Of a DNA stretch of 64,000 bases, positions 1 to 33,236 are shown piece after piece. The first letter of the stretch is position 1. Every line of letters begins with the position of its first letter. The translations under genes and the position numbers were made by a program. This DNA comes from Paraphysomonas bandaiensis (Eukaryota; Protista; Chrysophyceae). The stretch spans positions 1 to 64,000 of the forward strand of contig CBFFRP010000096.1 in assembly GCA_965644295.1 (NCBI GenBank), read 5' to 3'. The notes under the pieces were generated by a model that was not told the DNA's origin, made no database searches, and was given only the letters and a program-made list of their open reading frames with translations.

Positions 1-26
1 TGTACTTCGTTCAGTTCTGTATTACT
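1..26 (+). other. Residual Oxford Nanopore ligation adapter (technical artefact)
   Basis: TGTACTTCGTTCAGTTCTGTATTACT closely matches the ONT adapter AATGTACTTCGTTCAGTTACGTATTGCT and directly precedes the telomere. Confidence 0.93.
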
Positions 27-2952: not shown

Positions 2953-3028
2953 AGTGATTATTTATACCAACACAATACTTAACCCTACCCCTAATAGCTA
3001 CTATTACCTTCGTTCAAAGAGAGAAATT

Positions 3029-3388
3029 CTAGCCCACATAGGAATCTGAAGGGTTGATTTCATTTCCTCGATCGATTGCAATGATCGGAGTACACAAGCG
3101 TCAATTTGTGACAAATGATGAGATTCAAATGTTTTTGTGAGTGCCCTCAGCTCTACAATACGGGCATCCGGAATTGGCTCGTGATCCCAAAGTTGGACGT
3201 CGTGGTATCATCAGCTCTTTATCATTTCTAGCCACTTATACGCCAAACAGATCATAGATATTCCTTCGTCAGCTGGAAAGCAGTCGTACCCCCTCGCACA
3301 GACAACCTTCCGATCCAGAACATCAGTCGATGCAGTGCATGAACTTCCTTGACGAAAGCCTTCCGATGGAATCGAGACACCAATATCT
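3029..3388 (-). pseudogene. Degenerate tandem copy of the 3' ~385 bp of the adjacent REase-kinase gene
   Basis: 3029-3388 aligns with 3389-3773 (e.g. GTACACAAGCGTCAATTTGTGACAAATGATGAGATTCAAAT and CAGCTGGAAAGCAGTCGTACCCCCTCGCA occur in both) with substitutions and short deletions. Confidence 0.9.
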
Positions 3389-5011
3389 CTAACCCATATA
3401 AGATTCTGATGGATTGGTTTTCATTTCCTCGATCGATCGCAATGCTCGGAGTACACAAGCGTCAATTTGTGACAAATGATGAGATTCAAATTTTCTTGTG
3501 AGTGCCCTCAGCTCTACAATACAGTCTCGTACTGCATCCGGAATTGGTTCGTGATCCCAAATTATCTTCGCGAGTGCTGGACGTCGTGGTATCATCAGCT
3601 CTTTATCATTTTTTAGCCACTGATATGCCAAATAGATCATAGATATTCCTTCGTCAGCTGGAAAGCAGTCGTACCCCCTCGCATCAGCAATCATCCGATC
3701 CAGAACATCAGCCGATGCAGTACATGAACTTCCTTGACGAAAGCCTTCCGATGGAATCGGGACACCAATATCTCGGAATGGCTTGGCTGAACTCCAGTCC
3801 ACTAAGTATACCTCTTTATGATTATTGTTCGGTTGACAATACGCAATATTCGCAACCCGCACGTCGCGGTGACAGACACCAAGTTCATGCACAGAGCTCA
3901 ATATTTTCCAAGTCGCATGCAAATGACTACTTTTCAGAGTGTTCATGTTAAATGGAGAGAAAACAATGGACTGTGCATTATAAAAGGGGAACTCGCTGTC
4001 GGGGAATCTCTGAAGAAGGCTCTCTTGCATATCGGAAATAGTTGGAATTCTAAGTAGACTTCCACTACTTGCTTCCAAGTATTTCAGAATAAGTCGCTCT
4101 GTTAACAGCGCTTCACAATCCCTTGAAATTTTCAAAGCAACTTGTGTTTCATTGAATTTGACCGACAGACAGGTTGCAGTGGAGCCTCTGCCCAGTGGGT
4201 GGAGAGGGGTGCATGTCTCAAACGGAAAGAAAGGTACAAACCCTAAAAAAGATCGATCGCATGATAGAAAATCACTCATTTGAGCGCTTGCTTCCTTTCC
4301 AGAAAACACTTTGGAGTGGATAAACATCTCAGTACCATCATCGGCCAGAAGTACAGCGCAAAATACGACTGTTCTGATATTGTACACCGCAGTCACAAAA
4401 AACTTTCTTCCAGGGCAACACAACAGCGTACATCTCGAATAGTACAGCGCTTGGTTAATGAAATTAATGACTTCGACGTTTAGTTTTTTCAACTCGACAT
4501 ACGAAACAACCGCCCAAGGAATGAAGCGGTAGGAAGGAAGAGTGGTTTCCCTCCCAACAACTCTCGCATTAATCTTATTTCCGACTTCGTCATCAAAAGG
4601 TATACGAATAGTAAGATCCGGCCCTTTACATTTTAGACTAGATGAACCAAAGTTTAATTTTCGAAAACCAGCAGAAGCATTACAATTGCTAAGGACTGCT
4701 TCACTTGTATTCTCCAAAATATTGTCTCCATAACTCTTTATATCAGAAAAGAGAGTGCTGTGAAATTCAAATTCGGATATATTCTTGTAATCACTGCTCT
4801 CTGATAATTTACTTTCAATCTCTTCTCGGATTGCTTCTAATTCATTGTTGATTAGTAGATTTCTCTCGATCGATATTTGATTGTTTTGTCGCGTGTAAGT
4901 CATCAATTCCGTCAAAAAATCAGATAATTTAATGGCCCGAGAAGGTATAACATCTTGAGCCGGTATGCCAAAGTCACACGTTGACGAAATTTCTGTTGAT
5001 TGTAAACTCAT
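3389..5011 (-). CDS. Crinkler/RHS-like protein: PD-(D/E)xK restriction-endonuclease-fold domain + protein kinase-like domain (possible extra 5' exon at ~5080-5185)
   Basis: REase motifs KGPDLTI...VSYVELKK...QALYY...GRKFFVTAV; kinase motifs LGRGSTATC, VALKIS, E of helix C (LTERLIL), VCHRDVRVANI, YLVDWSSA; 540-aa ORF without stops. Confidence 0.8.
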   Translation of the reverse strand: MSLQSTEISSTCDFGIPAQDVIPSRAIKLSDFLTELMTYTRQNNQISIERNLLINNELEAIREEIESKLSESSDYKNISEFEFHSTLFSDIKSYGDNILENTSEAVLSNCNASAGFRKLNFGSSSLKCKGPDLTIRIPFDDEVGNKINARVVGRETTLPSYRFIPWAVVSYVELKKLNVEVINFINQALYYSRCTLLCCPGRKFFVTAVYNIRTVVFCAVLLADDGTEMFIHSKVFSGKEASAQMSDFLSCDRSFLGFVPFFPFETCTPLHPLGRGSTATCLSVKFNETQVALKISRDCEALLTERLILKYLEASSGSLLRIPTISDMQESLLQRFPDSEFPFYNAQSIVFSPFNMNTLKSSHLHATWKILSSVHELGVCHRDVRVANIAYCQPNNNHKEVYLVDWSSAKPFRDIGVPIPSEGFRQGSSCTASADVLDRMIADARGYDCFPADEGISMIYLAYQWLKNDKELMIPRRPALAKIIWDHEPIPDAVRDCIVELRALTRKFESHHLSQIDACVLRALRSIEEMKTNPSESYMG

Positions 5012-5519
5012 TAGTAATATCTGTATTGATATGAAATGTGAAGGGTATTATGAAGCGAATGAAGTGGATGGAGTCACTAACATCAAAACACACAGAAAGG
5101 CGACAGGGGGCACGGGCGCTCTGAGCCGCCTAGGCATTCCTCTTGCGCCGGGAGCGCTCCGCATCGTAATAAAACTCTCAAGCATTCTCTGGCTTCATCT
5201 CTTTATTTATTTCACTTTTTCTTCGAAGGTACTCCAACTGTGTGACATAACACACAGCAGTGCTTGTACATGTATGTAGTAGTATCATAAAAAGAGCCCC
5301 CCAAAAAATAGGGCGGCAGGAATGGATGTATTCTTTCATAATACAGTGTGAGTGTGGTATGTATTCTCTCTGTTGATGGTAGGACACTGCATGACTATGA
5401 AATTCCACGCATGAGTTAATGACAGTATACCTTATATCATCAGTGTAGAGCACGAGTCGCATCACACTTCCGTAAATCTTATTAATAGAGTGGGAGAAGT
5501 TGTCACTAAACACTCCAAT

Positions 5520-5990
5520 TCACAGGTGACAACAGCATTAGATTGTGCTTCGATATGAAGCAAGTCGAGCTCTCTTGGTGACCTTGGCGCTGTCCAGAAC
5601 ACGCTGTGCACAATCAGTTGCTTCACTTTTGTCGTGATTGCTGTCGGATGAATCCAGTTGCAGATGTCTAACTTCTCTTCTCTCATTGCTTGTCAACTCT
5701 CTTACATCGTTCCCTTGAATTTGCCACTGCGTTCTCAGAATTTGCACTGGCAACAATGGTTTCATTCGGAGAAAGATACTAGATCTTTAAAACGCTTAGT
5801 TCTATATATCACATATATCAAGTTCCATTAAATCTATAAGTACTGGGTTCATATCAATGACATCATCTGCATTGTCGCTGAGGGCTGGAAACAATGCAAC
5901 ATGTCTCCACTCAAGATCGCAATCCACAAGACTATGACGAGCGATCTATTCGACACTTCCATTATGCGCCCACTCCGCTGTAATATCTGA
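5520..5990 (-). pseudogene. hAT-family transposase relic (C-terminal half; frameshifts and stops)
   Basis: Joining frames gives YLSPNETIVASANSENAVA/KIQGNDVRELTSNERREVRHL...AQRVLDSAKVTKRARLASYRST, colinear with the hAT relic at 29261-29533 (YLGDSAAIIHNAAFEKVVVKIR...AQRLI...RKRARL...YR). Confidence 0.7.
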
Positions 5991-7111
5991 GGTCAAATAG
6001 AATCATTTAGTTTCGTTGTCCACGCGTCAAACCGCTCGCCATTAAGTAACTCACTGTTCGCAACTCTACCCCAGTTTGATATGTATCAAAACATAGCTCA
6101 AAGTATCCCTTGAAAGAACGATAGATAGTGGTCAATGACTGATATAAGTAGTGTCAATACTTGAGAAAGCTATCTTTCTTTAATGGAAGTCTAAATATAT
6201 ATGATAACCTTAAATATACCTCGAAATATACCTTATTATATTTTTTTTAAATACTATAGGAGTACAGTCAGTAGATATGACCAGTTTATACTACGTATTA
6301 CTTTTTACTACCTCTACTAGGTATAACAGGGTACAGGCAGTAAATACTACCACATTCTATCATTACAAATTCGAAGAATCCTGTTAGAATTGGACACTTC
6401 ACTGAAGTAACTTTGTAACTTTTCTCTACACGTAAACCCAAATCTTGTTTTGTTGAACAAAGTACACAAGAAATATTATGACTACTAATCTGAACACTTC
6501 GCTGCATATTCGTGTAATATCTGTTCTCAACAACAACATCTGTTTATCATATGTTCACCACTCACTCCTATATCTTATATAGTTACACATCAGTAACTGA
6601 ATTTAATTTCTTTGAAACCATAACCATCCGTTACACCTACGAGTTGACTTCACCTATTGCACACTATTAACTCACTTTAACTACACTATATATATCACAT
6701 CATATTGCAGAACTCAACACTCCCACTCAATTGGATGTAGTCAACATTCTAAAATTTATGAAGAACATTGCCATCGGACCTCATAGGACACAGGTGGACG
6801 TAATATATATATGTATATATATAGCTAGCTCCCACCATTCATACACTCCAAACTAGTTACGTCGAGCTCTCTTTACCTTGGGTACCTCTGCAATAGTTTG
6901 TTCAGTAGTCTTAAATTTTCCCCATGATTTCGCTCCCTTCTTCAATGAATATTGAACCACACAAAGCCTTGGTATAAATATCAGCCATCTGTTGTCGTAA
7001 GAATATAATAAGAATTAACATTTATTTTACGCGCTCGTAAATGATTATCAGCAACTACTTTGCAAATGGCTGGTAGTGTACCAACAGGGTTGTCCCCAAA
7101 AAACGAATCCG

Positions 7112-9370
7112 CTACTGAATACTGCACGATGCCTGTTGCGTTCTATTAACCGACGGCGGGGCTGCAACACATGTTGTCGTAGTAGAAGACAACAGCAACT
7201 GGTTGGCAATTGTAAGAAGACTTGGATCAAGGATGGCATTTACCACCCAATTACATCCTGATTCTACTTTCACCTCAAACCTTGACCTTAAAGCTTTATC
7301 AGACCTGGATCGAGAAGTCATTCTAAAATGTTTCAGAATATCTTTTTCGATCACTACACCTCCAGCATTTCGCCACGACTTCAATGTCTGTACGCAAAAT
7401 ACATTGCATTGCTTGGTTGTGGTTACAATTAGCCGTCGTGGTGTAATGATCACACCAGGAATGGTTCTTCGTATCGCCTGCACGATGAGACAGACTCCAA
7501 CTTGAGCTTTCATTACTATTTCAGTAATATGCTTATCTCCAACATCCTTTAATTGATAATTCTTCTTGTAGTTAGTAAGGGCAGTGATCATCGAATTATT
7601 TCCTCCCCCAATTTCAACATTCCGTCGTCCTCCTTCGCATTGCCAGAGATCTAAATACCAGGAGTTGTTTTGCGACTCATCTTCTTCGAAGCAAATTCCA
7701 TCTAGTCCGTGCTCCTTTATCCAACGTATATGTTTGAGATTCAGTTCCCGAAGAGAATCAAGGGTAAGCGGCTCGAGCAGACCGTCTGCACTTTGAATAC
7801 ATAGTTTTCTGTCATTATTTATGATCAGCACAACATCACGGTCATATTGAGCATACTCATTGATGTTTGCACTGGTGTACACACCTTCACGGACGAGCTC
7901 TTCCAGTGCATATCCCGCATTCACATCGGTTACATTGCCGCCGCCACTAATGAAAATACCACAAACCATTAGGTGAACTGCAGACAGAAGCAACAGTTTG
8001 TGCTGTGGAGGGGGCAGCTCGCTATTGAAAATGATCGCATCTACAGGGCGTGAAAATTGTACACTGCCATTTGCATCAATGTAAATAATACTATTAGCTT
8101 CCGCTGTGTCAATAATATCACTTGGAGAGCCAACACCAACTGCTGATAGTGCTTGTCGAAGCATTACTTTATCTACACCACCACAATGTGAGATATTACC
8201 GAAGGCATCTTTCTCTGGCTGTGCAGCCATCAGTAAATAAGCTATTAACACACGATTCTCAGCACTCTCTAGCACTTTCTCGTGTTTTACTTTTCGATAG
8301 ACCATGACGATTCGAATACACTCTTCACTGCACAGGGGTATTTTTAGTGTATCAGGATATCTGAGCATACACTCCTCCCACACAATGTGCACCCATCGTC
8401 CGATTCCTCCTGTATATGCCAACAGTAACGACAGGTCGTTTTTCTTCAAATCCCACAGTGGGTACCGAGTGTGGATATAGGCCTCCAGCACTTCAACCGT
8501 TCGCAGGGCGGGGACAGTATGCGGCTCGTATAATGTGCCGTTGAAGTCAGGATAGCCACGCTTTCGCCAATGGTCTGTACTTTCTCCACTACCCTGCTTG
8601 AACAATAGTGAGGGCATGTCAACGGATGATCCTCCAATCACGCAAAATGTTCCGCACGTGCGCGAGTATCGATGGAAAGTAATGGCGGCATCCCTACCAG
8701 CAATCCAAGCGGGATTATCCGCAAATATAAAATTGTGTTGAAACTCATCTAATAGAAGAAAAGCATTTTGACAGTGACCATTCAGAACATCCAAAGGATC
8801 CGCCTCAGAATCAGGTTCAAGAGAGTGGTAGATATCTAGTGCCTCCCATAAGATACATTCTGGTGTTTTGAAAACCAAGTAATCGTGGCAGATTGGTATC
8901 ATATGTTTTAAAAGTGCTGCAGAACTTAGAGCCAGAGCCCGCATCAAAGTTGTCTTCCCCACACCTTCCACACCTCCCAAAACCAAATGTCCTGCATTGT
9001 TGGCGCTGCCAGTAATCATGCCAACTTCACGCTGTAGCAAGCGCTTCACGGCTGTTTCCAAAATTAATACTAGTGTGTCGGATTTATACAGAGGGGGCAG
9101 ATAACAATAATGCTCAACTGGAAAACTCGAAAATATCTTCCAAACTTCAAAGAAATACGGTATGGCAGTCAGTATTCGTCTCTTGCCTTTGGAGAGCAAA
9201 TTTCCAACTTCATTGCGGATGCGTAACAACTTGCAAAGATTCTCTTCTTCAGAGCTATCATTTCCCTCGTTAGGCTTCAACTGTTCACACTTCAGGACGT
9301 CCTCTCTCAGGTTGTAAAGATCAAGTGTAGTGGGCAAGTACCGTTTTTTATTTCGTTCAAAAGCAGACAT
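7112..9370 (-). CDS. Crinkler/RHS-like P-loop (STAND-like) NTPase + C-terminal restriction-endonuclease-fold protein
   Basis: Walker A LVLGGVEGVGKTT, Walker B FLLLDEFQ, sensor strand VIGGSS, YTGGIGR motif; C-terminal AGYALEE...GLDGICF...LDLWQCEGG pattern; single 752-aa ORF. Confidence 0.72.
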   Translation of the reverse strand: MSAFERNKKRYLPTTLDLYNLREDVLKCEQLKPNEGNDSSEEENLCKLLRIRNEVGNLLSKGKRRILTAIPYFFEVWKIFSSFPVEHYCYLPPLYKSDTLVLILETAVKRLLQREVGMITGSANNAGHLVLGGVEGVGKTTLMRALALSSAALLKHMIPICHDYLVFKTPECILWEALDIYHSLEPDSEADPLDVLNGHCQNAFLLLDEFQHNFIFADNPAWIAGRDAAITFHRYSRTCGTFCVIGGSSVDMPSLLFKQGSGESTDHWRKRGYPDFNGTLYEPHTVPALRTVEVLEAYIHTRYPLWDLKKNDLSLLLAYTGGIGRWVHIVWEECMLRYPDTLKIPLCSEECIRIVMVYRKVKHEKVLESAENRVLIAYLLMAAQPEKDAFGNISHCGGVDKVMLRQALSAVGVGSPSDIIDTAEANSIIYIDANGSVQFSRPVDAIIFNSELPPPQHKLLLLSAVHLMVCGIFISGGGNVTDVNAGYALEELVREGVYTSANINEYAQYDRDVVLIINNDRKLCIQSADGLLEPLTLDSLRELNLKHIRWIKEHGLDGICFEEDESQNNSWYLDLWQCEGGRRNVEIGGGNNSMITALTNYKKNYQLKDVGDKHITEIVMKAQVGVCLIVQAIRRTIPGVIITPRRLIVTTTKQCNVFCVQTLKSWRNAGGVVIEKDILKHFRMTSRSRSDKALRSRFEVKVESGCNWVVNAILDPSLLTIANQLLLSSTTTTCVAAPPSVNRTQQASCSIQ

Positions 9371-10647
9371 TACAAGGGAGATAGCTCTACTTCATGCTAA
9401 CAGCTCAACTGCCCCAGTACTGTGCCATGGGTGTACTGGTTGGTTTGTTAGGCAGAGAATGTGTCAAAGGAAGCAGCAGTTCATATCACACAAAAAAGCC
9501 GTGATTTTATTTCTATTCTCTTTGTAAGGTCTACACAGTAAAAATAGGGTCGCACGAGGCATTGAAAATTACTGTTTTCCAACTTTCTGGTCTACAAAAA
9601 CACTCTCCACAAGAATATCAATAGCTTACTTCTTTGATCCACCAAAAATCCACCTACACAACATATCCGGCTGATTGCTTGATGGTAACCACACTATGTA
9701 TACATAAACACATAGTGATTTCATGGCACATGCTACTGCTTCTTGATTTAGCTGGTAGATGATATGGTGAAGTGGAAATCACACTGGGACAATTGGTCTT
9801 TGATATCTATTTCAAAGACAGACATAGCAGAGTTGATTCCATGACTAACACCAGAAGACTATCGGGGTTCATACTGCAGCTGATCAGTAGAGAGACTCAC
9901 ATAAGAACTGCACTTGCTTTATATTTACGTTCTCATAGTACCCTGAGCGTACTGATGTACTTGAGGACATCGTGTTAAAGCATGGCAATCATAGTCTACA
10001 TACAGTCTACTCTGCGGAGGACTGTCGTATGAGCCGGCACTTTATGGAAGATATATATTATGTGTTCTGTATCTGAATATGTTATATTTTGCCTTCATAG
10101 ATCATTGTGATTAGTATTCTGGAATGTACTGTCTAGAGTAGCAATCTCCTGAGGATGGATATCATACCAGTCCAAGAGTAGATTGGTATCAGTTTTCCAT
10201 ATGTTGCTGCACCTGTCAAGGATAGCCATGTTTACACATAATGTAATTGTTAATAATATTAAAAGATTGTTGTGACTATGTTGTTGTGTTTATGAGCATA
10301 CTGATAATAGTGTGCTTATCAAATGCATTGCGAACGCAACCACTATTCATCCGAGCTGTCGAGCAAACATATATATCAAATCTAATCCGTGCAAACAAAT
10401 AAAGTCATCACTCTATAGGCCCTACAGACTTCAAGAGTCACTTCTTAACTAAATAGGAACACGCTTGTATATTCCTGACCTGTACACTGTTGAGTTTTGC
10501 TGTTTGTGAGCAATTCAAAGCTGTATTTCTAAGGTATTTGAATTTTTACCGCTACTTGGAGAGTAGTGAAATATTTAACAGTATTACATGAACTAATGAG
10601 ATGATAGGAATAATAGTTGTATATTGACTGTATAAAATCATTTCTAT

Positions 10648-10762
10648 CCAAAGAGCTCACTTTTAGTGGGCACACCTGGGGATTCGATTATCCAATGATT
10701 AATCCAGAGATACATAGTGGCAGTTCATATACACTGTAGTACAGCGTACAGGTGTGCAGGTA
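10648..10762. repeat. Dispersed repeat family B, copy 1
   Basis: CCAAAGAGCTCAcTTTTAGT..ACCTGGGGATTCGATTA..CAATG.TTAATCCAGAGATACATAGTG is shared with 47361-47492. Confidence 0.8.
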
Positions 10763-12082
10763 CTATCTAATATCCGATAGTAATAGTTGGTAGTTGAGAA
10801 AGTATCAATGAAAGGTGAGACATATATGTAGACTGCAATTTAAATAATAATCACTCTTTATCATTTAAACACTCTTTAAATAATATATATATTATTTTGA
10901 AGTGCGTTTAATATTTTGGTATGAGCGGCCCCGTATTCTCTCCCTCTATTGGTGTGTCAAGCATCGATTTTTTACTGGGAGCGGGTTATCAAGACAACAT
11001 CTAGGAAAGAGGTGTGTAAAATAAACGTTACCGTTGATATTTCAGTATATATATGTGAACTGTCTCTTTCGTCAAGAATATAAATAATAAGTCAGATGTG
11101 GCTAGCAAGGAGTTATATGGGAGTTTCCGCTATAGACTCGCTCTGCGAATGAAAAGTTGCAATATATTAAGGACACCCCCCACCATATAATCCTGGTGAA
11201 CATCGGTTTATCCTGACCACTTTTTCAGATCCTCTTTGAACTTGTTTCGAATGGCGATCGGTGCAATGTCGGCGGGTCTCACTGGCCGTTCCTCGAGTTC
11301 TAAATGTTTTTTTCGTTCTTGCGCTTGAACCATGCCTTGAGTTTCTTCGTCCCTAGGTGATCATATTATATCATAAATCGACATGTTTGGATGGTATAGA
11401 CTAAATTTACTAAACGTAATTTACACTCAATGCTTTTCGAACTTTGAAAGTTGCTACCAATCTGAACTACCATCATGCCAACTTCGGACATTTTGGATAT
11501 GGTGAAAGAAATAACTTAAGTTACTGAACTTCAACTCAAGCAATAATCAATTATTATTTAATGCTGTAACACGAAACACGTAACACGTATGTTTCTCAAA
11601 TATAGAACTGTAGAATTCGTTAAATACAATGAGAAACACTGTTATACGTAGTCGAAAATACTATGTAGCTAAACCTGTGATACTGAAGTATATTGACGAT
11701 TCAAGATACGGAAGTTGATCAGAGTTGATATGAGAGAAGTATGAAATTACGTTGTTGATATGTTTTACATGACAACGCATAATTGCCTGTTAGAAATAGA
11801 CATTTTTAGTAATAAGACCTTTTCGTTAACACTTATATGGAATATTATATAATTATGAGAGATACCATACTTCATTCATTGACGTTCACCAACTCTTTCT
11901 ATCTCTACTACACCAACCATTTCTAGTACGATCTTACATCGTCACTATCTTGTACAGTCAGTATATTTCAGTTTTATCACTACAATGGCTATCATATTAT
12001 TGGTTCTCATACTACAGCTAGCTACTACTGTATTCTTTGAGTAACGGATATAATTCTAATATTTTGGAAACTACAGCTTTTA

Positions 12083-12308
12083 ATTGCTCACAAACAGCAA
12101 AACTCAACATTGCCTACGCAATAATAATCATCTATCTTGTCTAACAACATGACTGTTTTTTAACGATCTAAACAAGCAACATGTTCAAAGCCAATGTTTA
12201 AATTGTAATTAACAAGTATTCGCTACAATTATATTCTCTCAACTACCAATCATTATTAGATCTCAGTAGATAGACACGATTATTGCTCACAAACAGCAAA
12301 ACTCAACA
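12083..12308 (+). repeat. 27-bp exact direct repeat ATTGCTCACAAACAGCAAAACTCAACA (12083-12109 and 12282-12308)
   Basis: Both copies read directly from the sequence. Confidence 0.85.
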
Positions 12309-12400
12309 ACCTTAATCCTAATCGAATAGAAAAGTAAAATGAAATGACTGAATTCTTTAGACGTATATATAGTATGCACTCACATGTTTTACAAATATAA

Positions 12401-15400
12401 TTATAATATCCTTGGCAGCAGCTCCAATGGCGACTGGCCATTACGTTCTTTTACTTTATTAGCCTTCAAAGCATGTAGCTCGTTCGGACACACTTCCCAG
12501 CAGAAAGACAGCGCATCACCCTTTGGTTGATCATAAACGGCCAGATAAACAGCAGACGCAAGAGTTTGTCTAGCATATATCAAGAAATAATTATTGATGT
12601 ACGTGTCGCATGTCTTCATTCCATGTTGACTACGAAGTGCTTCACTTAGCTTCAGTGCGTCGTCATCGAATCGTTTGCGATATAATTTCTTGAGTCGGTC
12701 ACTGATGATCTCACTGTTTGTGCTTTCACCACTGTAGTACATCCGCCAGGCTGCATTATAGGCCACCAAGTGTTCACGCCACTCGTCTACTAGCTTATGA
12801 TGTTCGCCAAGAACGTCGTCCAATACTAAATCCTCATCTCTCACATGGATCCTACTCAGACAACATAGTGCATATAAGTTCTGGAGTACACAACACACAC
12901 GATAACTCACGTATTCGACAGCCATATAAACGTTCGACACTGGTTTTCTCTATATGTTTCCATAAGTAATTATCCGAGGAACAGGAAAAAATGATACTTA
13001 CTTTGGCTTCCGGCAGCAGTAAAACTTCCTACCCTGGTTTTCACCAGGCTTATTTTGTGTATGCAGCTGGCACGGCAGATCACACTCGCACCTGGGAATA
13101 ACATATCTTCCGTCAGAGTTGAAAAGAGGATCGGGTGAAATAGACGGTTCCGCTAGAACTAAACCATTAACTCGGTCAAAGAGTCTACCAAGAATAGACT
13201 TGCTTCTGAAATATTTCTTCGTGCAATTGCCGGTACAAGTATAATGGGGCATCATGACATTTAAGAGGTCAGGGTTTTCAGTAATGATCTTTCCTGATTT
13301 GGCACAGTCTAACAAATCCAAAACTAAATTATAGCAGGATCGTGTCACTGCGGGATCTCCCCCTTGGGATTCGTTCTCGACATGCGCGAGCAAGGAATTC
13401 GTGTACCGCCCGAGTAAAGACTTCTGAGCCATTGTCACAAGACCTGCATCGAGTGAGCATCTAAGATATGTATTAACATATAAGGTAAACACTCACTCTC
13501 CAGCCGCTGCCAATGCCACTCAAAACTATTAACTCTTCTGCATTGGACTGGCGTATCACTTATCGATAGAGACGTCATCACGTCAACCAGATAATCTGCT
13601 GTATTATCCTGTTCTTTCACTGTCACGGGAGGTGTATCTCTCAAAGCAGTAACAAATTCATTGTTGCAAAACATGACCATATATAAGTCCCCGTCGAAAT
13701 CTCCACCACCCTACAATCCCAGAATTAAATTCAGCTATCTCATTTGCAATTTACACACTGACCATTTCATCGGCCGCAGACCTATGTCCCTGGGTAGAAA
13801 AAAAAATTACCCCCCCTCCAGTACCGCGCAAAAAGGATGAAATGATAGGACTCTTCACAGCTGTCAGAACTCGTATCTCATCCTCATGTAAAGTGGGGGG
13901 GCGAATAACTACCACCTTACCAGTCACCACGGTCCCTGCCTCAAGATCCACGCTGGCACCACGCTTCAGCGCGACATATACTTCTCCCGTCTTCAGGGTC
14001 CCAGTGGGATCAGGTGCACCCGGTAGATAACAAGACCCGCATACTCTTATATTGAAACGTTTCATGCGGTTAAGTTCCATCGCCTGAATATAACGCAACA
14101 AACGTTGAAGCGACGGTTCACGGATATCATGTCCGGCCTGCAGGAAGGCTAATGCCTTTTCATACACAAATCGATCTCGCATAGAAGCACTGCCTATTCT
14201 TTGCTCAAAACTTCTCCATCCCTCACTCCTTCTTAATTCATTGTCATCGTCATCGTCGTAGTCACTCCTGCCTTGAGTCTCAGATGGACAATGATCACTT
14301 CTTCCCATCCCAGAACTCATGATGCCACGACCGATCACCATAAGGGCTACTTCCCGACTGCTGCAAAGGTAAGTCAATCGACTGAGCTCCTCCTCTTGTA
14401 CAGCTTCAAACATGGCAGCCGGTACACCCCGCCGCTCCAAAAACAGACAAGAGAACTTGTTGAGATTCGCAAAACAATTGTTTCCACCCACCAGTTTCCT
14501 AGTGGTGATATCCGGTAGTTCAAAGGTACAGACAACATCCACAGTGATCGCCGCCGAAGGACGCGGACAAAAGCCAGGACCCTCAGCTTTTTTCATGCTT
14601 TCCCGCATGACAAGGCACCCTTCCGGGCAGATATATGGGTCTCCTGTCACCAGGAGACAGCCTTTGAACAAGCCACGTCCGCAGACTAACCGCACCTGAA
14701 CTATAACCGGCAGGGGGAAAGAAGGCGGACGAGGAACGCCTGGATGCAGAGCCCGTCCATTGCGCACGCAATAGGGGATCTGTCTGGCCAGACTAACCTG
14801 CAGCATGCGTTAGCTACTAAAACACAATAAGTAGATATTACACTGATGAAGCCACATCCGTCCGTCATGATACCGCCCCTGGAAGAAACTAAGTCTGGGA
14901 TAACAGAAACTTGGTTATTTTTAATCATACAGCAGGGTAAAGTCTTTGAAAATCCTAACGCTAATCGCGCCGTAAGTTTTTCCGGAGAGATGTCAATGGG
15001 AAAGCATCCAAGAGTGTCAATAGCATTGTCCACAGTAACTGGATATAGACGGTGAGTTGTGTAGAGAGCTGCCTCATCATTATTATCCACAGCAAAAAAA
15101 TATGCCTTGAGAGATGTATTCGTCTTCGACTTGTGTTCTTTACCATATATAAATTGGAAATTTCTACCCCCGAGATCAATGCCTTTCTCGTATAGTCTAC
15201 GGAGGGCATGGTGTTCATTCCACCGAGGTTCAGACGAGGATGGCAAGTCTTTCAGAGTGACGACCATGAATCGACTGGCCCCAAAAACACGGGCGAAGAA
15301 AAAATTCCCCCTGCTACTTGGACCATGATGAGTCACTTCGTATAAACTACAGTTTGTACCGAATGATACATCACAATGCCACAGCAGATCACTCCCTGCA

Positions 15401-15624
15401 GAGGGGTCCAGATACTCACGTATACCATCCATATCGATATCCCTTTCGCGACTCTTCTCGCTTATAATGCTTATTACTTTGGAGCACATCTCTTTGTGTT
15501 CACAGCTAGCAACGCTGCACACGAGAGGCCCATAATCAACACTCTCGACACCCTTGAGCTGAAGAATAGACAGCAGCCTAAAGAGATTCTCTTCTGAAAT
15601 ATCAGAACGTATGTCATTGCTCAT
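12401..15624 (-). CDS. RDR: Eukaryotic RNA-dependent RNA polymerase (RNAi RDR, gamma-type DFDGD), multi-exon, with a GRF zinc finger near the C-terminus
   Basis: KLTARLALGFS, MTDGCGFIS, QVRL..GLFKGCL, GAPDPTGTLKTGEVYV, VVVIRPPTLH, IFFSTQGHRSAADEM; the 52-bp intron 13711-13762 joins to GGGDFDGDLY; SKSILGRLFD; CECDLPC...PGENQGRKFYCC...QCRTFIW. Confidence 0.95.
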
Positions 15625-16008
15625 GATAGCCGAAATTTACTCGCTGTTACAGTATTAGCATCTACTGTTGGCTAAACATGTAATGGTATTATACGCCCAC
15701 ACGATACAGTCATGCATAGTATAGAGATAGACACACAACGGGAGCTTCGGGACATCACTGTATACTATACTGGTACTCCCACATACCTCACCTGCAAAGG
15801 GATCCTTCGTAGTATCCTAGCTACAGTACCTACCTCTGTACATACATACATAAAATACATACACATATACACATACTTCGTACATACGTGCATACATACT
15901 GCGGTATATACATATACCGGTATATACATGTATGTATTTTGTGGAGATCCATTTCGAATATTTGTAATTGGAATGAATGCAGTGAGGGCATGAATTGTCA
16001 GTGCTGAT

Positions 16009-19000
16009 ATGTCCAGGTCTAGGAGAAGGAAGAAGGAAGACAGCAGTGAGAGTGACCAGTCCTCTGACTCATGCAGTGATGCTAATGCCGGTGAGGGCGA
16101 AAGAGATGAGATTGATTCCGATAATGAGAATGACATGAAGAGAGAACAAGCGGCTCGTTTGGAGCAACTGCGCCGAGAGCAATTTGAGAATGGCGTCTCT
16201 GATAATTCCGAAAGGCGTCTCGAGTATCTGATGGCTCAGTCTGAAATATTTTCTCATTTTCTTCCTGAGGGAGAAGAGAGTGCTCTCAGTAGTAGACGAG
16301 AGGCATCAAGTAAGCGCGGAAGGACCAGAATATCAGAAGAAGACGAGGACAAAAGATTAATGAAAATTGCTCAATCTAAATCACGTGTCACTCGCCTCCT
16401 GACTCAGCCATCATCTGTAGTGGGCGGTACGATGAGACCGTACCAAATTGAAGGTCTTAATTGGCTCATAAAACTTAATGAAAACGGGATAAATGGCATT
16501 CTTGCTGATGAAATGGGTCTCGGCAAAACATTGCAAACGATATCTCTCCTCGCATATCTAAGTGAGGCCAGAGATTTGCCAGGGCCGCACATCGTCATTG
16601 TTCCAAAATCTACTGTCTCCAATTGGCTGAGAGAGTTCTCTCGGTGGTGCCCGTCGCTGCGAACCATACGACTGCTTGGCAACAAGGCAGAGCGCATAGA
16701 TGTGTGCACGAAACAGATGATTCCCGGTCTGTTTGATGTCATGGTAGCTTCGTACGAGTCTTGCCTCAGAGAAAGCAGGTACATTCGAAAGATAAAATGG
16801 GATTACCTTGTAATAGACGAAGCACACCGCATCAAGAACGAGGAGTCTTCTCTTTCAAAGCTCGCCAGAATGTTCCACTGTCAGAGCCGACTTCTCATTA
16901 CTGGCACGCCCCTGCAAAACAACCTCCATGAGTTATGGGCTCTACTTAACTTCTTAATGCCAGATGTATTTTCAAGTGCTCAGACGTTCGACTCGTGGTT
17001 CAATACTGACGATGAAACTGGAAAGGAGAACACCATAAAGAAGCTGCACACTGTACTGCGGCCTTTCATGCTCCGTCGTGTGAAGGCAGATGTGGAGAAA
17101 GATCTACCCCCGAAGAAAGAGACAAAACTTTATATTGGTATGACTGAGATGCAGCGGGAGTTGTATCGGCGCGTGCTCACTAAGGATATTGAGAGTCTAA
17201 ATGCTCTCGGTGGTCCGGACAAAGTGCGACTGCTAAATGTTCTCATGCAGTTGAGAAAGGTGTGTAATCACCCGTACCTCTTCGAGGGGTTAGAAGAAGG
17301 ACCGCCCTATGTAGATGGCCCGCATCTATGGCAGAACTCCGGCAAGTTGACCTTGCTTGATAAACTTCTTCCAAAGCTTCGGTCACAGGGGTCTCGGGTT
17401 CTTATATTCTGTCAAATGACGCGTATGTTAGACATACTTGAAGACTATCTGCTTTTGCGTCGGTATGCTTACTGCCGTATTGATGGGTCTACAGATGGGG
17501 CGTCCAGAGATTCCGCCATGGAGGAGTTTAACACACCTGGATCGGAAAAGTTTTGCTTTCTTCTCTCTACTCGGGCGGGTGGACTGGGTATAAACTTGGC
17601 TACTGCAGATACCGTTATTTTGTACGATAGCGACTGGAACCCTCAGGTGGACCTGCAGGCCATGGACAGGGCGCACCGAATTGGACAAACCAAGCAGGTG
17701 TTACAACTTGTGTAAGGTGTTATTTTTTTGACATTCTTTCTCTGTAAAGGTGCGAGTGTTCAGACTAATTACGGAAGGTACTGTAGAAGAAAAAATTATT
17801 GAGAGGGCCGACAGAAAGCTTTACCTGGATGCGGCAGTCATACAGCAGGGTCGCCTCTTTGACCAACACAAGGGCTCTCTTACCAAGGGGGAGGTCATGG
17901 CTATGGTGTGAATAATATCTTTATGTATCTACTATACTGAATATCTTTTGTGTTTAGGTTAAGTTTGGTGCAGATGAAATATTGAGCTCTAAGACTGGCA
18001 TACTCAGCGACGAAGATATCGACACACTGTTGATGCGCGGGGAAGAAAGGACTGCAGCCATGAATAGCAAGATATCTACTGAGGTGCAACATAGTTTGGC
18101 CAATTTTAGCGTGGTGATGGAGGATGGAGTAGAGTTGAACATGTTCACCTTTGAGGGAGAGAACTTCAACAAGAAGGAAGGTGGACGCAGACGGAATACT
18201 GCTGAAAACTCTTTTCAGATTAGTTTACCTCAACGGGAGCGTAGACGTAACTTCGAGTCAAGCGATTTCGTTGTTAGAGACCCATCGGTACATGGATATC
18301 ACTTTCTCGTCTTAGCATTTACCTGTTTTGGATAGGAAACTCAAAGAGCGGCTCCACGGCGCGCAGCTAGGAAAAGTGCTATGTCGATTCCTGATTACCA
18401 GGTGCTATTCCCTCACTTCTCTTTGATTCATTATAGTAATTGTGCTGTTCAGTTCTTTAACAAAAGCCGTTTGGATGAAATTTATGCCATAGAAGCCGAT
18501 CTTGCTGCAGAAAAGGCATCTCGCGTTGCGACTGTAAACAAGCTACGACACGAGGACGCTAAGGTCTTGGATTCAGGAAGTTCGGATGTTGTAGATGATA
18601 TTTTATGCAGGAAAAGCGGCGTGCGCTGCGCAAATCATTAGGCTGGAAGTTGCCCAAGGGGCAAAAACTCAGTCTTCATACTATAGCATCAGGTTGCGTA
18701 GGTGAGAAAGAGAAGCAAACGACCTCTGCTGGCGGTGTAGACACAGCTGGAGGTGATAGGAGTGACGATGATAGTAGCGATGAGGAATTAGAAGAGGATG
18801 GGGAAATTGAAGCGAATACAAATCAGGCAACTTCGCGAAATTCTTCTGATGCACCCTCTGCATCCAAAAGCGAGATGTGCGTGGCTGCAGATGAGATCGA
18901 GGCGGAGTTACAGAGTGGTAAGTTCGACCTCCCAACCGAACTTGAAAAGGAGAAGTCGGAATTGCTCGAAGAAGGCTTTCCGGACTGGAATAGGGCGGAC

Positions 19001-19750
19001 TTTCGAATTTTCTGCGGGGCACTGGAGAAGTACGGCAGACATAATCCACTTGCTGTTGCTGAGGATGTCGCACTCGAAACTGGAAAGACTAAAGATAACG
19101 TTTTACGGTATTTCAATTCTTTTTGGAAAAGTTATCGCGTGCTGTCTGATTGGCCTCGGATAATGGACAGAGTGGACAGGGGTCAACGACGCATAGACAG
19201 ATTGCAGAATATCCAGAATGCTGTCCATACGAAGATCCGATGCTACCAAGAGTCGTCAGGTGTTTCTACAGAAGATGTTTGCACAAGCCTTTGCGTCGGT
19301 GGGTCGACGGTATCTGCTTTCAGTTACGGCTATGGAGCAAATAGAGCAGGACGCCAGTTCACAGAAGAGAACGACAGGTTTCTTGTTCACATGATGAGCA
19401 GACATGGATATGGAGTGGCTGCTTGGGATAAAATTCGACGGGAGATTCGATCTGCCCCTGCTTTTTCCTTCGATTGGTTTTTACTATCGAGAACGGAGGT
19501 GGATATACAAAAGCGGTGTGACTACCTGTTGAAGCATATAGAGAAAGAGTTGGCCAATGACGCTGCTAGGGCGAAACATTCTTCGAGTAAACAAGAAAAT
19601 ATGTCAAGATCTAAGCGCTCTGCTGATGACATGGATCAGATTAATTCAGGAACAGGTGGGGTGGAGTGCACTGTGTGCAGTGAAAGCTGACTTTGTTTAC
19701 TAGGTAAGAAGCGGAAGAAGTCGCACGTTTCAAGCTCCAGTAATTCTTGA
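16009..19750 (+). CDS. ISWI: ISWI/SNF2H chromatin-remodelling ATPase (SNF2_N, helicase C, HAND-SANT-SLIDE), multi-exon
   Basis: [67 protein letters not shown]; [15 protein letters not shown]; [14 protein letters not shown]...FDWFLLSRT; spliced last exon ends TGA at 19750. Confidence 0.97.
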
Positions 19751-20070
19751 CTGTGGACACGATATGTTGACATCTGTACAAGTGTTCTGCCGTAGTAAAT
19801 GGAATCCACACTATTACTCTATGAGTTCAACAAAGGTTGTACAGAAATGTATAGGTGCGTGATGGCTAATTATTGCGCGATACTCTCCAGTTTTACCTCT
19901 ACATATGCTGTAGTGGCGTCTGATGACTTCGATATATACTAATGATTTAGATGATATGAGCTCTAGACAGTTTAGTTTTGTAATAAAGAAATTCTACTAA
20001 ATATCACAAGATAGAATATGATCTCGGTACTGAAAATTACCTTGTGAGGAATGTGATGAATCTATAAGAA

Positions 20071-21424
20071 GTAGTAATGTCTTATTATTAGCAATATGCG
20101 TTTAAGAGTCAGGACTACTTTAGCATTGCAGTTTAACTAAATCAATAAGAAACTCTCAGCGAAGATTTTATTGTTGAGCTTTAAGTAATTGTAAGAAATT
20201 AAAAACTTTTGAAGAACATAGTAGCTATAACACATAACACAGTATTACATGAATCAATGGTATGATATGAATTATGTTAGTAAAGTAATATATTGACTGT
20301 TTAAGATCAGATAATATTTATTGGTAGTGGTGAGGATATAAAGTAAGTAATGACAAAGAATAAAGAGATGCTGATCGAATATTTCATTAATTAATTCTTG
20401 ATGAAGCATGTTATATCATATATTGTCAGCAGATAATTTTCTGCCCACTCATAGTCTAATGCTTTTGTTGACGTTTTAAGGTCCTAAATGAACAGGTATC
20501 CGGGAATGGGCCCGCCTCAAAGGCATCCGGGGTATTGAGCTTCCTGCTAAAGTCTAGCGTTCGGACTGTTCACCTTAAGCACTCAAAAATTATGAAGTCA
20601 GTAGATGTCATGCATATCAATAATTTGCTTGCTCACTGCGTTTGCTCTTTGAATGATAGAGCTTGCGGTGACGTACAACCAGCGCTCGTAGCGTTATGTA
20701 GTAAGATACCAGTTAGTTAAATTGCAATAAAGTCGAGGTAATACCAAAACGTGTAAAAGCGATTTCACCAGGTTTCATATATAAGTATTGAGTTATATTT
20801 TACTGTAATTTGTATCTGAGAGGTTAAAGATACAGAAAAAGTCGCAAGTATAGTTGTTATTAGCAGTATTTATTGCGTTACAAGTTGGCCCTGCTACTTG
20901 TGTTTTGTAATAATATCATATTCTTATATAGCTACATCTGCCTCTCTTGAGACTGCAAACGCTCCAAAGGAATAGCCTGATTTTGGATACATTGCATATA
21001 CTTAATTAGTTCTGACTATTAAACCCCTATTGCTTATAATACGTCATTCACTACTACTAACTAACTACTACTATCATAATAGAGAAAGTTGTGGTTATTG
21101 AAGCTTGCATGCACCTATTCTCAATGTAAAACTAGTTTCTAAACACAACCGTTCTCATGAAATAATCAGACATTCTTAGACACCTATTCTCATACCATGA
21201 ATCAATGGTTCAGACGTAGCAATTATATTGCAGTTTGTGCTAACTAAATCATCATAGATGTTTAGTATTGATAAGGAGCTAGTTAGTATACTATAAATTT
21301 CTTCCTGAACACTGTGTATCTAAAAGCGTACCCTCAACAAAGTCGGACTCGCACCTTTTCGTGGTGTTCTGGGGGATAAGTACCGGAGATATTTCTCCAG
21401 GAAACTAACGTGAGCCGCAAACTA
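20071..21424. repeat. Three fragments of dispersed repeat family A (20071-20140 +, 20487-20718 -, 21331-21424 -)
   Basis: Matches to 36577-37096 and 44205-45122, e.g. CCTCAACAAAGTCGGA.TCGCACCTTTTCGT.GTGTTCTGGGGGATAAGTACCGGAGA and TGTTCACCTTAAG. Confidence 0.85.
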
Positions 21425-30200: not shown

Positions 30201-32977
30201 TTAAAAGCACACAGGGTACGATGATCCCCTGTCGACACTGTGGTAGTCGTGCCCTGCGTCGCCTCGAGTTCGTTCCATGTAATTAATAGCTGCACACCAG
30301 GACGAAGACAGAGTCCCCACAAAGAAATCGGCTTGGATGGATACGTATAGGTTCGCCATTGACAAGACAAAGTCCTGGAAAAAGTCAACATGGTCGATTG
30401 ATTTTACTGTGTGAATGGCTTCGTGTCTAGTCTGCTGTAGGTAATGAAAGCTGTATTGCGGATAGTCTCTACGTATGCAGAGTTAGTGCACAATCTCATG
30501 GCATCATTGACAATACCTGGTTAAATTTCGAATCACATCAACTGTTTCGGTGGACACAAATACATGTCGAATATGTGGAGCCTTGGTAGACAAGATGTGC
30601 ATATACTGTTTGAGGGGAACTGGCGAGACTTCAATAGCTTTCTCTCCGTAGCGCACATGCATGCTGGCAAAAGGATGCGGAGGGAACGAGGATGGACTAG
30701 GAGCGATGCGTCCACGAACAGCTTCCTTCAAGTATTCTGAAAACCACCTCCTCGGGCGTAATATGTACCTTGCCATTTGTGCCATCCAAGGCATTTTCTG
30801 AATACCCATGAATTTCCGGAACTCTAAGCGCGATTCCGTTTCACTTCTATGGTGGTCGAAAAGAGACCTGCCCCTAACAGTAGTCCCGTCAAAAAACGCC
30901 GTGCTTCCATCCCAGGGACTACCACAGACGGTACATTTTCCTGTCCACGACATCTGGAACATCGCCAATGTTTTCATATCCCGATAAGGATACTCCTCTA
31001 TCTCGTGACCATTCGCCAGCACATATGCATCCGCCATCTCATCGTCCGAGGGGCGGCATGACGTGAGCGGTCGGAAAAAGCATTCAAATAGTGAGTCTTC
31101 GCATAGTGAATGCATCCATCTGTTATGTGTCTTTGGGTTTCTTATGAACCGTCTCGGTGTCAAATAGAGTATTCGGTCGTTGCATATGGCAAACCGCATC
31201 ATGACAGCAATCTGCGCCAGCATACTGCCGATTCCATTTTTTTCAGTTGACGGCTCAAAGAGAAGGTACTTGGCCCCTGAACAGCCACGCCTTTGATGTT
31301 CAGTACCAGAGTTCATAGAGCCTGAAGGGTTCTGCCAAATTTCCAGGCGACGCTGAAACTCCAAAGTATGATTGCACCAAAGAGGATCCGTGCAAATGAG
31401 GGGATCATATTGTATATCAAAGGGTTCTGGAAGTGGATCCCCACCTCCTGAGCAACGCCCTGTTGTCATCAGTTCGGCATACATCTCACTCAGATATATC
31501 ACGCAAGCAGACAAGCCGTCATCAAGCTGCTGTTGCTCAAGAAGGGAGCTGAGAGTACTCATCTCAATCATGCCAACGCAATAGTAGTCCGCGTAGGCAG
31601 TTGCAGAGGCGGCAGTAAGGTGTGGTGGAAAGCGCAATGTGTAGGTCGGAAAGATATCGATTTCTGATGATCGTTGGGCAGCATCGCCCATTGAGGTGTA
31701 TCCATCAGTACGCACACTAAACGGTACTGGGAACGGTTGGAGAGGAGGAACAGGTGTGTCAAGATAGGTTGCGAGGTCGAACGCAACCGAAAAACTAGTA
31801 GGGATACTAATATGCGGACACCCGCGTGCAAAGATTGGGAGACTCATTTCAGTTGGTGTTAATCCTCCATCTCCATCTCTTTGTCTGATGCGCCGCACCT
31901 TGAAATTACCAGTAGAGCTTATCTCTTGTGTCCACGACCCAGAAACAATCGAGAACCAACTGACTGCAACGAAGTCATTACCTGAATATTGACCATCCAC
32001 TTCATACAATTCAGTCGTATGCAATACCTCCTCCTGATACGCAAAATATATATCATACTACAAAAGTAGAATCATTAGACGGTGTGACGTATGGTATGAC
32101 ACTGGCTTGCCTCCTCCAATAGAAACATGCCGGGGCGAAAGGGAAACAGAAGGAAGTCGCCTGTGTGGTCACTAGACATCCTTACATAGAAGTCATGGGC
32201 GGTAGCAATAGGGACACCAACGATGCCGATAACAACAAGGGAATCTAATTCCGAAGCTGATATCGGGAAGGCTCTGATGGTCTCTGATCGCACCACTGTA
32301 GACACGTGCCAAAAAACTGCATAGCCTGCACACCACAACTTACAAGAACGAGAATAGCTGCACACGCCAATACCTTCAGATGTAAGGAGCTCTATAACAT
32401 CTCTCGAAGGAGTGGAGAAGTCATTTGACAGATAAAGGAGTGGTTTACATTTCATCAGAATATTCGAGTTGTGAAGTAAAAGACTGCTGACGTCGGATAA
32501 TTTAATGAGAGTGGGGCAAGTAGAGCCAAAGTTGGCCTGGGACACAATATTTGTAATCGTGTCAATCGTCACGGCAGGTTTAGTTGTATCATTGCTAATG
32601 TATTGCAGATGGCCTGTAGCAAAAAGAACATTGGCACTCAGATGCTCACGACAATTCACTACATAATCAAACGCTGTTTTAGCTTGTTCAATTCCGACGA
32701 AGTGATTTTTTTCTCCGAAATGAGAAGCTAATTGAAATATGTGATATGCAGTCTGTGAATCGACCTCCACATACACGGAGCCGCTGTGCAGCACTGTCCT
32801 TAAGAAGTTTTGTACCTCTGGTTGCCATTCGCCATAACGACGAAGAAAATGAAGTGATGAGTGATTGTGGGAACTGTTGCTGCATTTTGTTATGATGCTC
32901 TCATCGAGATCATTAGAGAAGCACACTCCTCTGGCCAATACAATACAGCATGTGGTAAACCAGAGAATATGGTGCAT
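30201..32977 (-). CDS. Secretory-pathway protein: signal peptide, degenerate FkbM-like methyltransferase fold, C-terminal GT23 alpha-1,6-fucosyltransferase-like domain; multi-exon
   Basis: N-terminal ILWFTTCCIVLARG; YGEW..TVLHSGSVYVEV..PTLIKL..CKPLLYL; GIGSML, FECFFRPLTSC, SMHVRYGEK..E, VFVSTE, last exon ADFFVGTLSSSW. Confidence 0.75.
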
Positions 32978-33236
32978 ACAGTGCGATAGAGACAATGATT
33001 CGAGGAGGCGAAGAAGTGGATTTGATGTTACTGTGTACTGCTCTGTTCACCTGTAAGGCACTTGCATGTGCAGAGGGACCGTGTCATCAACTACACGATA
33101 TCCATCGTATGTACTTCTATTGCTAAGGGATCAGTGATCTTGTTCCAGTACCGAGGCACCATATCCAGATACCGTACACAGCATCAGGGCGAAGACAGGC
33201 AGGAAGTGGAAGTGAGCCCAACACTATGAACAGCAT

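Follow-up and report, generated by a model that had tools for sequence, protein, structure and literature searches.

What kind of genes occupy the last few kilobases before a chromosome end in a protist, and do neighboring genes there form a system? This question is raised by a 64,000-nucleotide stretch of DNA from the chrysophyte Paraphysomonas bandaiensis (contig CBFFRP010000096.1 of assembly GCA_965644295.1, positions 1 to 64,000; the whole of it is hereafter the window), which begins with a telomere followed by two long open reading frames (ORFs) that we refer to as ORF1 and ORF2. A preliminary description made from the sequence alone had read this end as a cassette of two Crinkler/RHS (CR)-type genes, one joining a restriction endonuclease (REase) fold to a protein kinase and the other joining a P-loop NTPase to an REase fold, arranged around a relic of a hAT transposon. 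From the analysis described here, we propose, with about even confidence, that the last 6.4 kb before the telomere hold two unrelated, intronless, lineage-restricted genes that have the domain order of the NTP- or kinase-regulated nuclease modules of conflict systems. This corrects the first reading on three points, as the pair does not form a conserved system, our searches of the spacer between the genes revealed no transposon relic, and the nuclease assignment is unproven.

ORF1 (positions 3389-5011, minus strand) encodes 540 amino acids, with a protein kinase C-terminal to a putative REase-like domain, and ORF2 (7112-9370, minus strand) encodes 752 amino acids. Both genes are complete and intronless, are the two nearest to the telomere, and have their 3' ends directed toward it, as the preliminary description had correctly stated for the two most distal genes. 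The start and end residues of both proteins align with those of homologues (identity up to 57% for ORF1 and 69% for ORF2), and we therefore consider them real genes and not chance ORFs. The genes located further inward are fragmented into several ORFs, which we scanned piece by piece with no spliced model joined; among them are genes for an RNA-dependent RNA polymerase (RdRP), an ISWI-type SNF2 ATPase, a 2-oxoglutarate oxygenase, a sulfotransferase and an Ank-BTB protein. One gap within the RdRP gene is a 52-nucleotide GT...AG interval, which is consistent with the earlier remark that core genes carry short introns of about 50 bp. The GC content at third codon positions (GC3) is 0.37 and 0.41 in ORF1 and ORF2 as compared to 0.42-0.50 in all 13 other coding stretches sampled in the window, and the two distal genes are slightly richer in AT than their neighbors. 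Within the window there is a single copy each of ORF1 and ORF2, plus a decayed fragment of ORF1 that is described below.

An AlphaFold2 model of ORF2 (predicted local distance difference test score (pLDDT) 86.4; predicted template modeling score 0.80) begins with an alpha-helical region that is also evident in the alignment (residues 1-100; positions 9071-9370, minus strand), with helices at residues 15-30, 40-60 and 63-80 and an invariant PP motif after them at residues 92-93. Residues 101-340 (8351-9070, minus strand) were assigned from Pfam, Foldseek and conserved alignment columns to an AAA+ NTPase of the ORC/Cdc6-STAND-like type. This domain contains a Walker A motif (132-141), a Walker B motif (D208-E209), a sensor-1-like serine (S248), R290 and a T-G-G-x-G-R motif (320-325), all of which are kept in at least 58 of 65 relatives whose identity is 17-31%. 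G133, G138, K139 and D208 are present in every one of the 65, and E209 is present in 63. The Pfam families AAA_16, AAA_22 and nSTAND3 matched ORF2 weakly, under their gathering scores (16 bits versus 27-33), and among the 65 relatives AAA_22 was matched by 21 and ATPase_2 by 7.

The ATPase domain is followed by a helical lid and winged-helix region (residues 341-470; 7961-8350, minus strand) that was recognized from predicted secondary structure and Foldseek. The best structural matches of ORF2 were ORC/Cdc6, archaeal PABY2304 (PDB 2qen), RFC clamp loaders, RuvB, CED-4/Apaf-1, NRC resistosomes and Avs3, with Foldseek E-values of 4e-7 to 1e-5 against ORC/Cdc6, 2qen, CED-4 and Apaf-1, and the alignments with ORC/Cdc6 and CED-4 extended over 430-490 columns. 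Together, the Walker motifs and these structural matches show that ORF2 has an AAA+ plus winged-helix fold, and the P-loop NTPase named in the preliminary description is confirmed. The REase portion of that assignment rests on motifs and topology, with no profile match.

The candidate nuclease portion of ORF2 is a putative PD-(D/E)xK (REase-like) domain at residues 471-728 (7187-7960, minus strand), which we delimited from predicted topology and conserved columns. The model places one helix before three strands, after which come a second helix and a fourth strand, at pLDDT values of ~86-96 except for a dip near residues 471-480. The conserved columns are E490, G555-x-D557, Q577-x-[K], K621 and TT-x-K (650-653), with E490 kept in 56, D557 in 53 and Q577 in 61 of the 65 relatives. 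In the model, E490 is located on the first helix, the G-x-D motif just before strand 2, the Q-x-K motif at the end of strand 3, K621 on the helix after strand 3, and T-T-x-K on strand 4. This layout is as would be expected of a PD-(D/E)xK nuclease with a glutamine at the second acidic position. The QxK pattern presumably resembles that of Mrr-type enzymes. Judged by identity to the closest relative, this domain is about as conserved as the ATPase domain (72% versus 77%).

ORF2 ends in a low-confidence Ser/Thr-rich tail (residues 729-752; 7115-7186, minus strand; pLDDT 31-36) that appears disordered in the model and whose terminal residues in the translation, CSIQ (7115-7126), form a CaaX box. 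A CaaX box of this type is a farnesylation-type signal. Of the 17 sequences in the ORF2 close set (the window's copy counted), 15 have a cysteine at position -4 with mostly aliphatic residues after it, as do 43 of 160 proteins of the wider family, a set that contains many fragments. At the final position, these 43 proteins have M in 17, Q in 9, C in 4, S in 4, T in 3, A in 2, N in 2, V in 1 and R in 1. A cysteine at this position was found in none of 11 ORF1 relatives. If the predicted prenylation occurs, ORF2 would be anchored on the cytoplasmic side of membranes of the producing cell or at its nuclear envelope. The conserved CaaX box therefore suggests a role in the producing cell rather than delivery to another organism. 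A precedent for a prenylated, nucleic-acid-directed defense protein is human OAS1 p46 (PMC9041830), in which a C-terminal CaaX box places the protein on endomembranes. The likeness is a functional analogy only, as the fold and enzymology of ORF2 are unrelated to those of OAS1 p46 and prenylation of the ORF2 family is predicted.

With these features, ORF2 resembles ORC/Cdc6, ATPase_2 (PABY2304, 2qen) and STAND proteins (CED-4/Apaf-1, NRC, Avs3) in having Walker A and B motifs and an ATPase core followed by a lid and winged helix. In STAND proteins this kind of switch is also coupled to an effector domain, an arrangement that ORF2 seems to share. However, ORF2 scores under every Pfam gathering score, lacks a repeat-type sensor (LRR, WD40, TPR), has a putative nuclease as its effector, and carries a CaaX C-terminus.

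Residues 263-540 of ORF1 (3392-4225, minus strand) were assigned to a protein kinase from Pfam, PDB and Foldseek matches and from invariant residues. The Pfam Pkinase match to ORF1 (E 0.003, 17.4 bits) is under the gathering score of 31.7, and Pkinase was matched by 9 of the 12 sequences of the ORF1 set, ORF1 included; a PDB sequence search identified CK2-alpha (E 3e-4), and Foldseek with the AlphaFold2 model of ORF1 (pLDDT 76) returned only kinases (ULK1, CK1, TTBK, ERK2; E ~1e-8). All 12 ORF1-family sequences retain GxG (274-276), K294, E305, H381-x-D383...N388 and D405, a set that covers the Gly-rich loop, the beta-3 lysine, the alpha-C glutamate, the HxD...N loop and the metal-binding aspartate. 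These results show that ORF1's C-terminal half is a protein kinase with a complete set of catalytic residues, as the preliminary description had it.

The other half of that earlier assignment, an REase domain in ORF1, stands at the level of motifs, without a profile match. A putative PD-(D/E)xK (REase-like) domain at residues 78-262 (4226-4780, minus strand) was delimited from alignment motifs, and it is the best conserved part of ORF1. The conserved positions are E100, P131-D132, (E/D)173-x-K175, Q187 and a CC-P motif (198-200); P131-D132 and K175 are invariant in the 12 sequences, position 173 is E or D, and Q187 is located on the next helix. The predicted strand-strand-helix-strand order would fit a PD-(D/E)xK core, although model confidence is low there. 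We infer a nuclease fold and activity for this domain from these motifs and from the predicted topology. A shared origin of the ORF1 N-terminal and ORF2 C-terminal domains was considered and rejected (hhalign probability 0.4%).

Several results weigh against reading these two proteins as regulated nucleases. For ORF1, neither single sequences nor a domain-only profile of the N-terminal domain gave a Pfam, PADLOC or PDB match, and at E<=5 none of the sequences in the full-length ORF1 alignment had a Pfam match to the REase clan. For ORF2, a domain-only profile of the C-terminal domain family had no sequence match in the PDB, and Pfam at E<=5 on all members of the alignment of this domain gave no REase-clan match; because of these two results, we treat the fold of the C-terminal domain as putative. 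Foldseek took the whole models, which are dominated by the kinase in ORF1 and by the ATPase in ORF2. A PADLOC search with ORF1 and ORF2 gave matches at the level of P-loop or catalytic-loop motifs only and no known defense family. In the lysine column of the QxK motif, the 65 ORF2 relatives have K in 53, N in 3, T in 2, Q in 2 and E in 1, and the sole glutamate is that of the window's copy, which may thus be a nuclease-impaired paralogue, perhaps without any cleavage activity, given this substitution. In addition, DNA nucleases do not usually carry a membrane anchor.

We asked how widespread the ORF2 and ORF1 families are and how their members are named. An exhaustive profile search identified 626 cluster representatives (50% identity) of the ORF2 family at E<=1e-3, of which 317 also passed E<=1e-10 and 133 passed E<=1e-30. 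The ORF1 family amounts to ~11 clusters of 5.8 billion, with one further fragment added by the alignment query; its 11 homologues (34-57% identity) are all hypothetical and were found on metagenome contigs from JGI or Logan. Thirty clusters of the two families were looked up, and these were unnamed, "hypothetical", under a generic label or listed by bare EukProt gene identifiers, with one labeled "Cdc6-like AAA superfamily ATPase" and a Bud32 label on one ORF1 relative. EukProt contributes three of the listed proteins, two of them from the chrysophyte Chlorochromonas (Ochromonas) danica. Where neighbors of ORF2 relatives are visible, they are fragmented, intron-bearing eukaryotic genes, and the relative itself is a single long ORF. 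ORF2 is best described as a member of a large, unannotated and new eukaryotic (protist) family that combines AAA+, winged-helix, nuclease-like and CaaX elements.

No relatives were found among the 2.9 million viral contigs of IMG/VR, and the fold matches in BFVD were generic AAA+ proteins, so we rejected a virus-borne origin. No relatives were found in the bacterial and archaeal species genomes of GTDB either, which is weak evidence as the patterns used were narrow. Three divergent ORF1-family members (L025, L028 and L029), 34-41% identical to ORF1, come from the single JGI sample 3300073941 and may be paralogues of one organism or copies in several related organisms.

These data also bear on the possibility that both genes serve ordinary cellular roles, with ORF2 a divergent ORC/Cdc6-like replication or chromatin ATPase, ORF1 a divergent signaling kinase, and the nuclease motifs coincidental. 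Such roles would agree with ORC/Cdc6 and clamp-loader subunits as the best structural matches of ORF2, with the large size of its family, one member of which is located ~17 kb inside a 49.5-kb contig, and with the fact that no nuclease family was matched. However, the motif columns persist in 65 relatives whose identity is 17-31%, and the putative nuclease domains rank with the best conserved portions of the proteins. Furthermore, no Pfam ORC/Cdc6 family matched ORF2 over threshold, the generic "Cdc6-like AAA" label is the only name that links a relative to replication, CaaX boxes are not characteristic of ORC/Cdc6, and the ORF1 family has just ~11 clusters, as above. We therefore consider ordinary roles for the two genes improbable.

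A second explanation for the domain orders is that both genes are true CR effectors. They would then encode toxin modules that are introduced into other organisms or directed against them, and their divergent headers would not be ubiquitin-like (Ubl). According to PMC5289972, which summarizes Zhang et al. 2016, NTPase+helix-turn-helix (HTH)+REase accounts for about a quarter and REase+kinase for about a sixth of CR C-termini, and in both classes toxicity is attributed to the REase. ORF2 follows the order of the former class, with a P-loop NTPase, then a (winged) helix-turn-helix and then a putative REase-like domain at the C-terminus, and, like CR proteins, it is lineage-restricted, eukaryotic and free of housekeeping annotation. 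ORF1 matches the latter class, for example CRN8 of Phytophthora infestans, in having a putative REase-like domain N-terminal to an intact kinase (PMC5289972). With the REase-like domains putative, both genes have the domain orders of the two commonest CR C-termini, and this part of the CR likeness claimed for them earlier is supported. The same source describes CR headers as Ubl domains or various alpha-helical domains, and residues 15-80 of ORF2 form three helices, which leaves room for an alpha-helical header. The CR explanation also draws on the subtelomeric site of both genes and on the presence of a relative in Chlorochromonas danica. This alga is a stramenopile, as are the Crinkler-bearing oomycetes.

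Membership in the CR families, in contrast, found no support from Pfam or from names. We observed no match to Pfam Crinkler or RHSP in ORF1 or ORF2 (E<=1), in 64 ORF2 relatives (E<=0.001) or in 11 ORF1 relatives (E<=5), and names of the CRN or RHS type were absent from the 30 clusters looked up. The beta-grasp fold is absent from the models of ORF1 and ORF2, and Pfam and the models identified no Ubl or LFLAK header in either protein, in agreement with the preliminary description on the latter point; a signal-like N-terminus is likewise absent. In comparison to the CR NTPase+HTH+REase class, ORF2 thus lacks a Ubl/LxLFLAK header, has a conserved CaaX box, and contains a putative REase fold. In comparison to the CRN8 class, ORF1 is headerless and belongs to a very small family that is known from metagenome contigs only. 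CR effectors form lineage-specific multicopy expansions, which in the case of RHS are clustered at subtelomeres. Each gene has one copy in the window, and the conserved CaaX box of ORF2 implies anchoring to the producer's own membranes, which is at odds with delivery; we found no paper linking Crinklers with CaaX boxes. ORF1 and ORF2 can be described as headerless and CR-like in architecture, with kinship unproven, and we regard true CR effectors as an unlikely explanation of them.

Having described the two genes separately, we return to whether they belong together, as the term "cassette" had implied. We fetched 29 related loci, several of them with flanks of 1.5-10 kb, in which the ORF1 family is represented by 5 distinct proteins and the ORF2 family by 11 proteins or matches. 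When both proteins were searched against these loci with tblastn, the two families never occurred on the same contig. An ORF1 homologue of 57% identity and an ORF2 homologue of 55% identity derive from the same sample series, where they are located on different contigs with different neighbors, and the neighbors of the relatives are unrelated to ORF1 or ORF2. A metagenome scan for additional contexts returned five short loci only. The enrichment near telomeres that had been suggested also found no support in these loci, as no telomere array is present in the 29 of them (the sole match being a 12-nucleotide, two-unit stretch in L028) and one relative, surrounded by intron-bearing genes, is located ~17 kb into a contig of 49.5 kb. 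Three relatives are located 0.05-2 kb from a contig end, a position that could reflect repeats and proves nothing. We conclude that ORF1 and ORF2 are adjacent here only through their common subtelomeric location and are not a conserved two-gene system.

Two side observations were made on the flanks of relatives. On L005 (2-6617), three long single-ORF genes (612+, 675 and 711 amino acids) are located upstream of an ORF2 homologue; their Pfam matches are none or weak, and they show no similarity to ORF1 or ORF2. On L001, a 562-amino-acid protein with a Pfam DUF5898 match (3739-5427, minus strand) is divergently oriented beside the closest ORF1 homologue and has no detectable kinship to ORF1. 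DUF5898 is among the kinase-clan families (PMC9758233).

The intergenic spacer between the two genes (5012-7111) is the site at which the hAT relic had been placed, and we analyzed it with Pfam, Rfam and repeat searches. A hAT element would be expected to encode a transposase with BED, RNase-H-like core and C-terminal dimerization domains and to be bounded by short terminal inverted repeats and an 8-bp target duplication. The interval 5000-7130 contains 28 open frames of at least 40 amino acids, of which the 20 largest were scanned with Pfam at E<=1 and the eight shortest (40-45 amino acids) were left out. Neither hAT nor any other transposase or other meaningful Pfam match was observed in these 20 of 28 frames. 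For the spacer itself (5012-7111), Rfam gave no match, terminal inverted repeats were not found, and the window contained no second copy. We therefore rejected the hAT relic, which is supported neither by Pfam in the 20 frames nor by Rfam, inverted repeats or dispersed repeats.

The telomere-side limit of the interval in the preliminary description also does not coincide with the end of ORF1. Self-match and tblastn identified a decayed tandem partial duplicate of the ORF1 3' end at 3028-3389 (minus strand; counterpart 3388-3774), which is separated from the telomere array by ~75 bases. The duplicate is 87.6% identical to the ORF1 3' end over 388 columns in the self-match; a second alignment of it has 17 mismatches and 9 gap openings, and at least 2 stops are present in every frame. 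In tblastn it matches residues 413-533 of ORF1 at 72% identity, and the direct-repeat families D1-D4 reveal it as well. Position 3029, at which the interval of the preliminary description starts, is the end of this decayed duplicate and not that of ORF1. The tandem copy shows that local rearrangement has occurred. The low GC3, absent introns and decayed duplicate fit the turnover that is typical of subtelomeres.

These same features could be accounted for if ORF1 and ORF2 had come to the subtelomere with a mobile or selfish element, either as its cargo or as what remains of it, with NTPase and REase domains acting as its maintenance or transposition proteins. ORF1 and ORF2 are intronless in an intron-bearing genome and have GC3 values below those of their neighbors, the partial tandem duplicate of ORF1 abuts the telomere, several relatives are located within 0.05-2 kb of a contig end, and prokaryotic NTPase+REase pairs are linked to transposable elements (PMC5289972). 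On the other hand, in the frames scanned no transposase, integrase or reverse-transcriptase domain is located between or beside ORF1 and ORF2, and neither terminal inverted or long terminal repeats nor dispersed copies were found in the window. The absence of relatives from the 2.9 million viral contigs and the location of relatives among ordinary eukaryotic genes also argue against mobility. We consider a mobile or selfish element an unlikely source of the two genes.

We thus return to the reading of ORF1 and ORF2 as separate genes built like regulated nuclease modules, and infer for them a role in conflict or defense. ORF2 would be a farnesylated, membrane-tethered, ATP-switched sensor-effector that is kept inside the producing cell. 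Its winged helix would engage nucleic acid, and ATP-dependent assembly would license the C-terminal nuclease-like domain. The target may be nucleic acid that the protein encounters at membranes, for example foreign DNA during invasion or replication, or nucleic acid at the nuclear envelope, and the most likely role would be defense against, or conflict with, invading DNA. By analogy to CRN8-class proteins, ORF1 would use its active-looking kinase to regulate the nuclease-like domain or to mark targets.

Protist innate immunity and genetic conflict are poorly charted. The layout of an ATPase switch plus a nuclease, as known from bacterial defense proteins and CR modules, recurs here in a large eukaryotic family that is unnamed by any database and in which many members have a lipid-anchor signal. 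If this layout means what it suggests, the ORF2 family would be a testable candidate for membrane-based nucleic-acid defense in algae and other protists. A bolder form of this proposal, which is speculative and unlikely, is that the ORF2 family represents an undescribed, widespread class of protist innate immunity, in which a lipid-anchored ORC/Cdc6-STAND-like ATPase would sense foreign nucleic acid at membranes and fire a fused nuclease. Such a class would be a eukaryotic counterpart of bacterial ATPase-nuclease defense, held at membranes through a CaaX box much as OAS1 p46 is in mammals, and subtelomeric copies would be its reservoir of diverging and sometimes nuclease-impaired paralogues.

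Outside the interval of the two genes, the telomere array consists of CCCTAA repeats on the plus strand (TTAGGG type; 27-2952; 487.7 hexamer copies with 100% matches), and the non-telomeric bases that were read from the sequence at the very end of the window (1-26) are probably a read or assembly residue. The telomere repeat is of the vertebrate type, but the RdRP gene, the very short introns and the chrysophyte relative indicate a protist or fungus-like eukaryote rather than human DNA. Inward of ORF2, positions 9371-12400 form a gene-poor stretch of 3 kb between the distal gene pair and the intron-bearing core genes; it contains just two ORFs of at least 60 amino acids (65 and 68), and the GC content is 0.35 in 10001-12000. 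An inverted repeat of ~70 nucleotides with 86% identity (10488-10556 and 12040-12109) surrounds a 1.5-kb AT-rich, ORF-free stretch in this gap, and a clear target-site duplication was not seen. The stretch 10488-12109, which is outside the interval of the claimed hAT relic, may be a non-autonomous DNA-transposon relic.

The RdRP gene (12401-15624, minus strand) is located ~3 kb inward of ORF2, has Pfam RdRP matches in four ORF pieces and encodes a GRF zinc finger at its C-terminal end, and the ISWI-type SNF2 ATPase gene (16009-19690, plus strand) is next after it. An 8-nucleotide-period tandem array, recognized as a self-match ladder at 33234-33514, is located in or beside an ORF at 33184-33678, and a related stretch of 60-80 nucleotides is found between the RdRP and ISWI genes (15839-15918). 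Short dispersed repeats (43-175 nucleotides, 77-93% identity) are common to four AT-rich intergenic stretches (20070-21422, 36578-37086, 44205-45122 and 63107-63243) and are probably relics of one repeated element. The window also contains ORFs of ~300-500 amino acids that have no Pfam match (30504-32024, 32075-32995, 39019-40476 and 53961-55415), along with an uninterrupted Pfam-less ORF of 1254 amino acids at 58663-62427 (plus strand).

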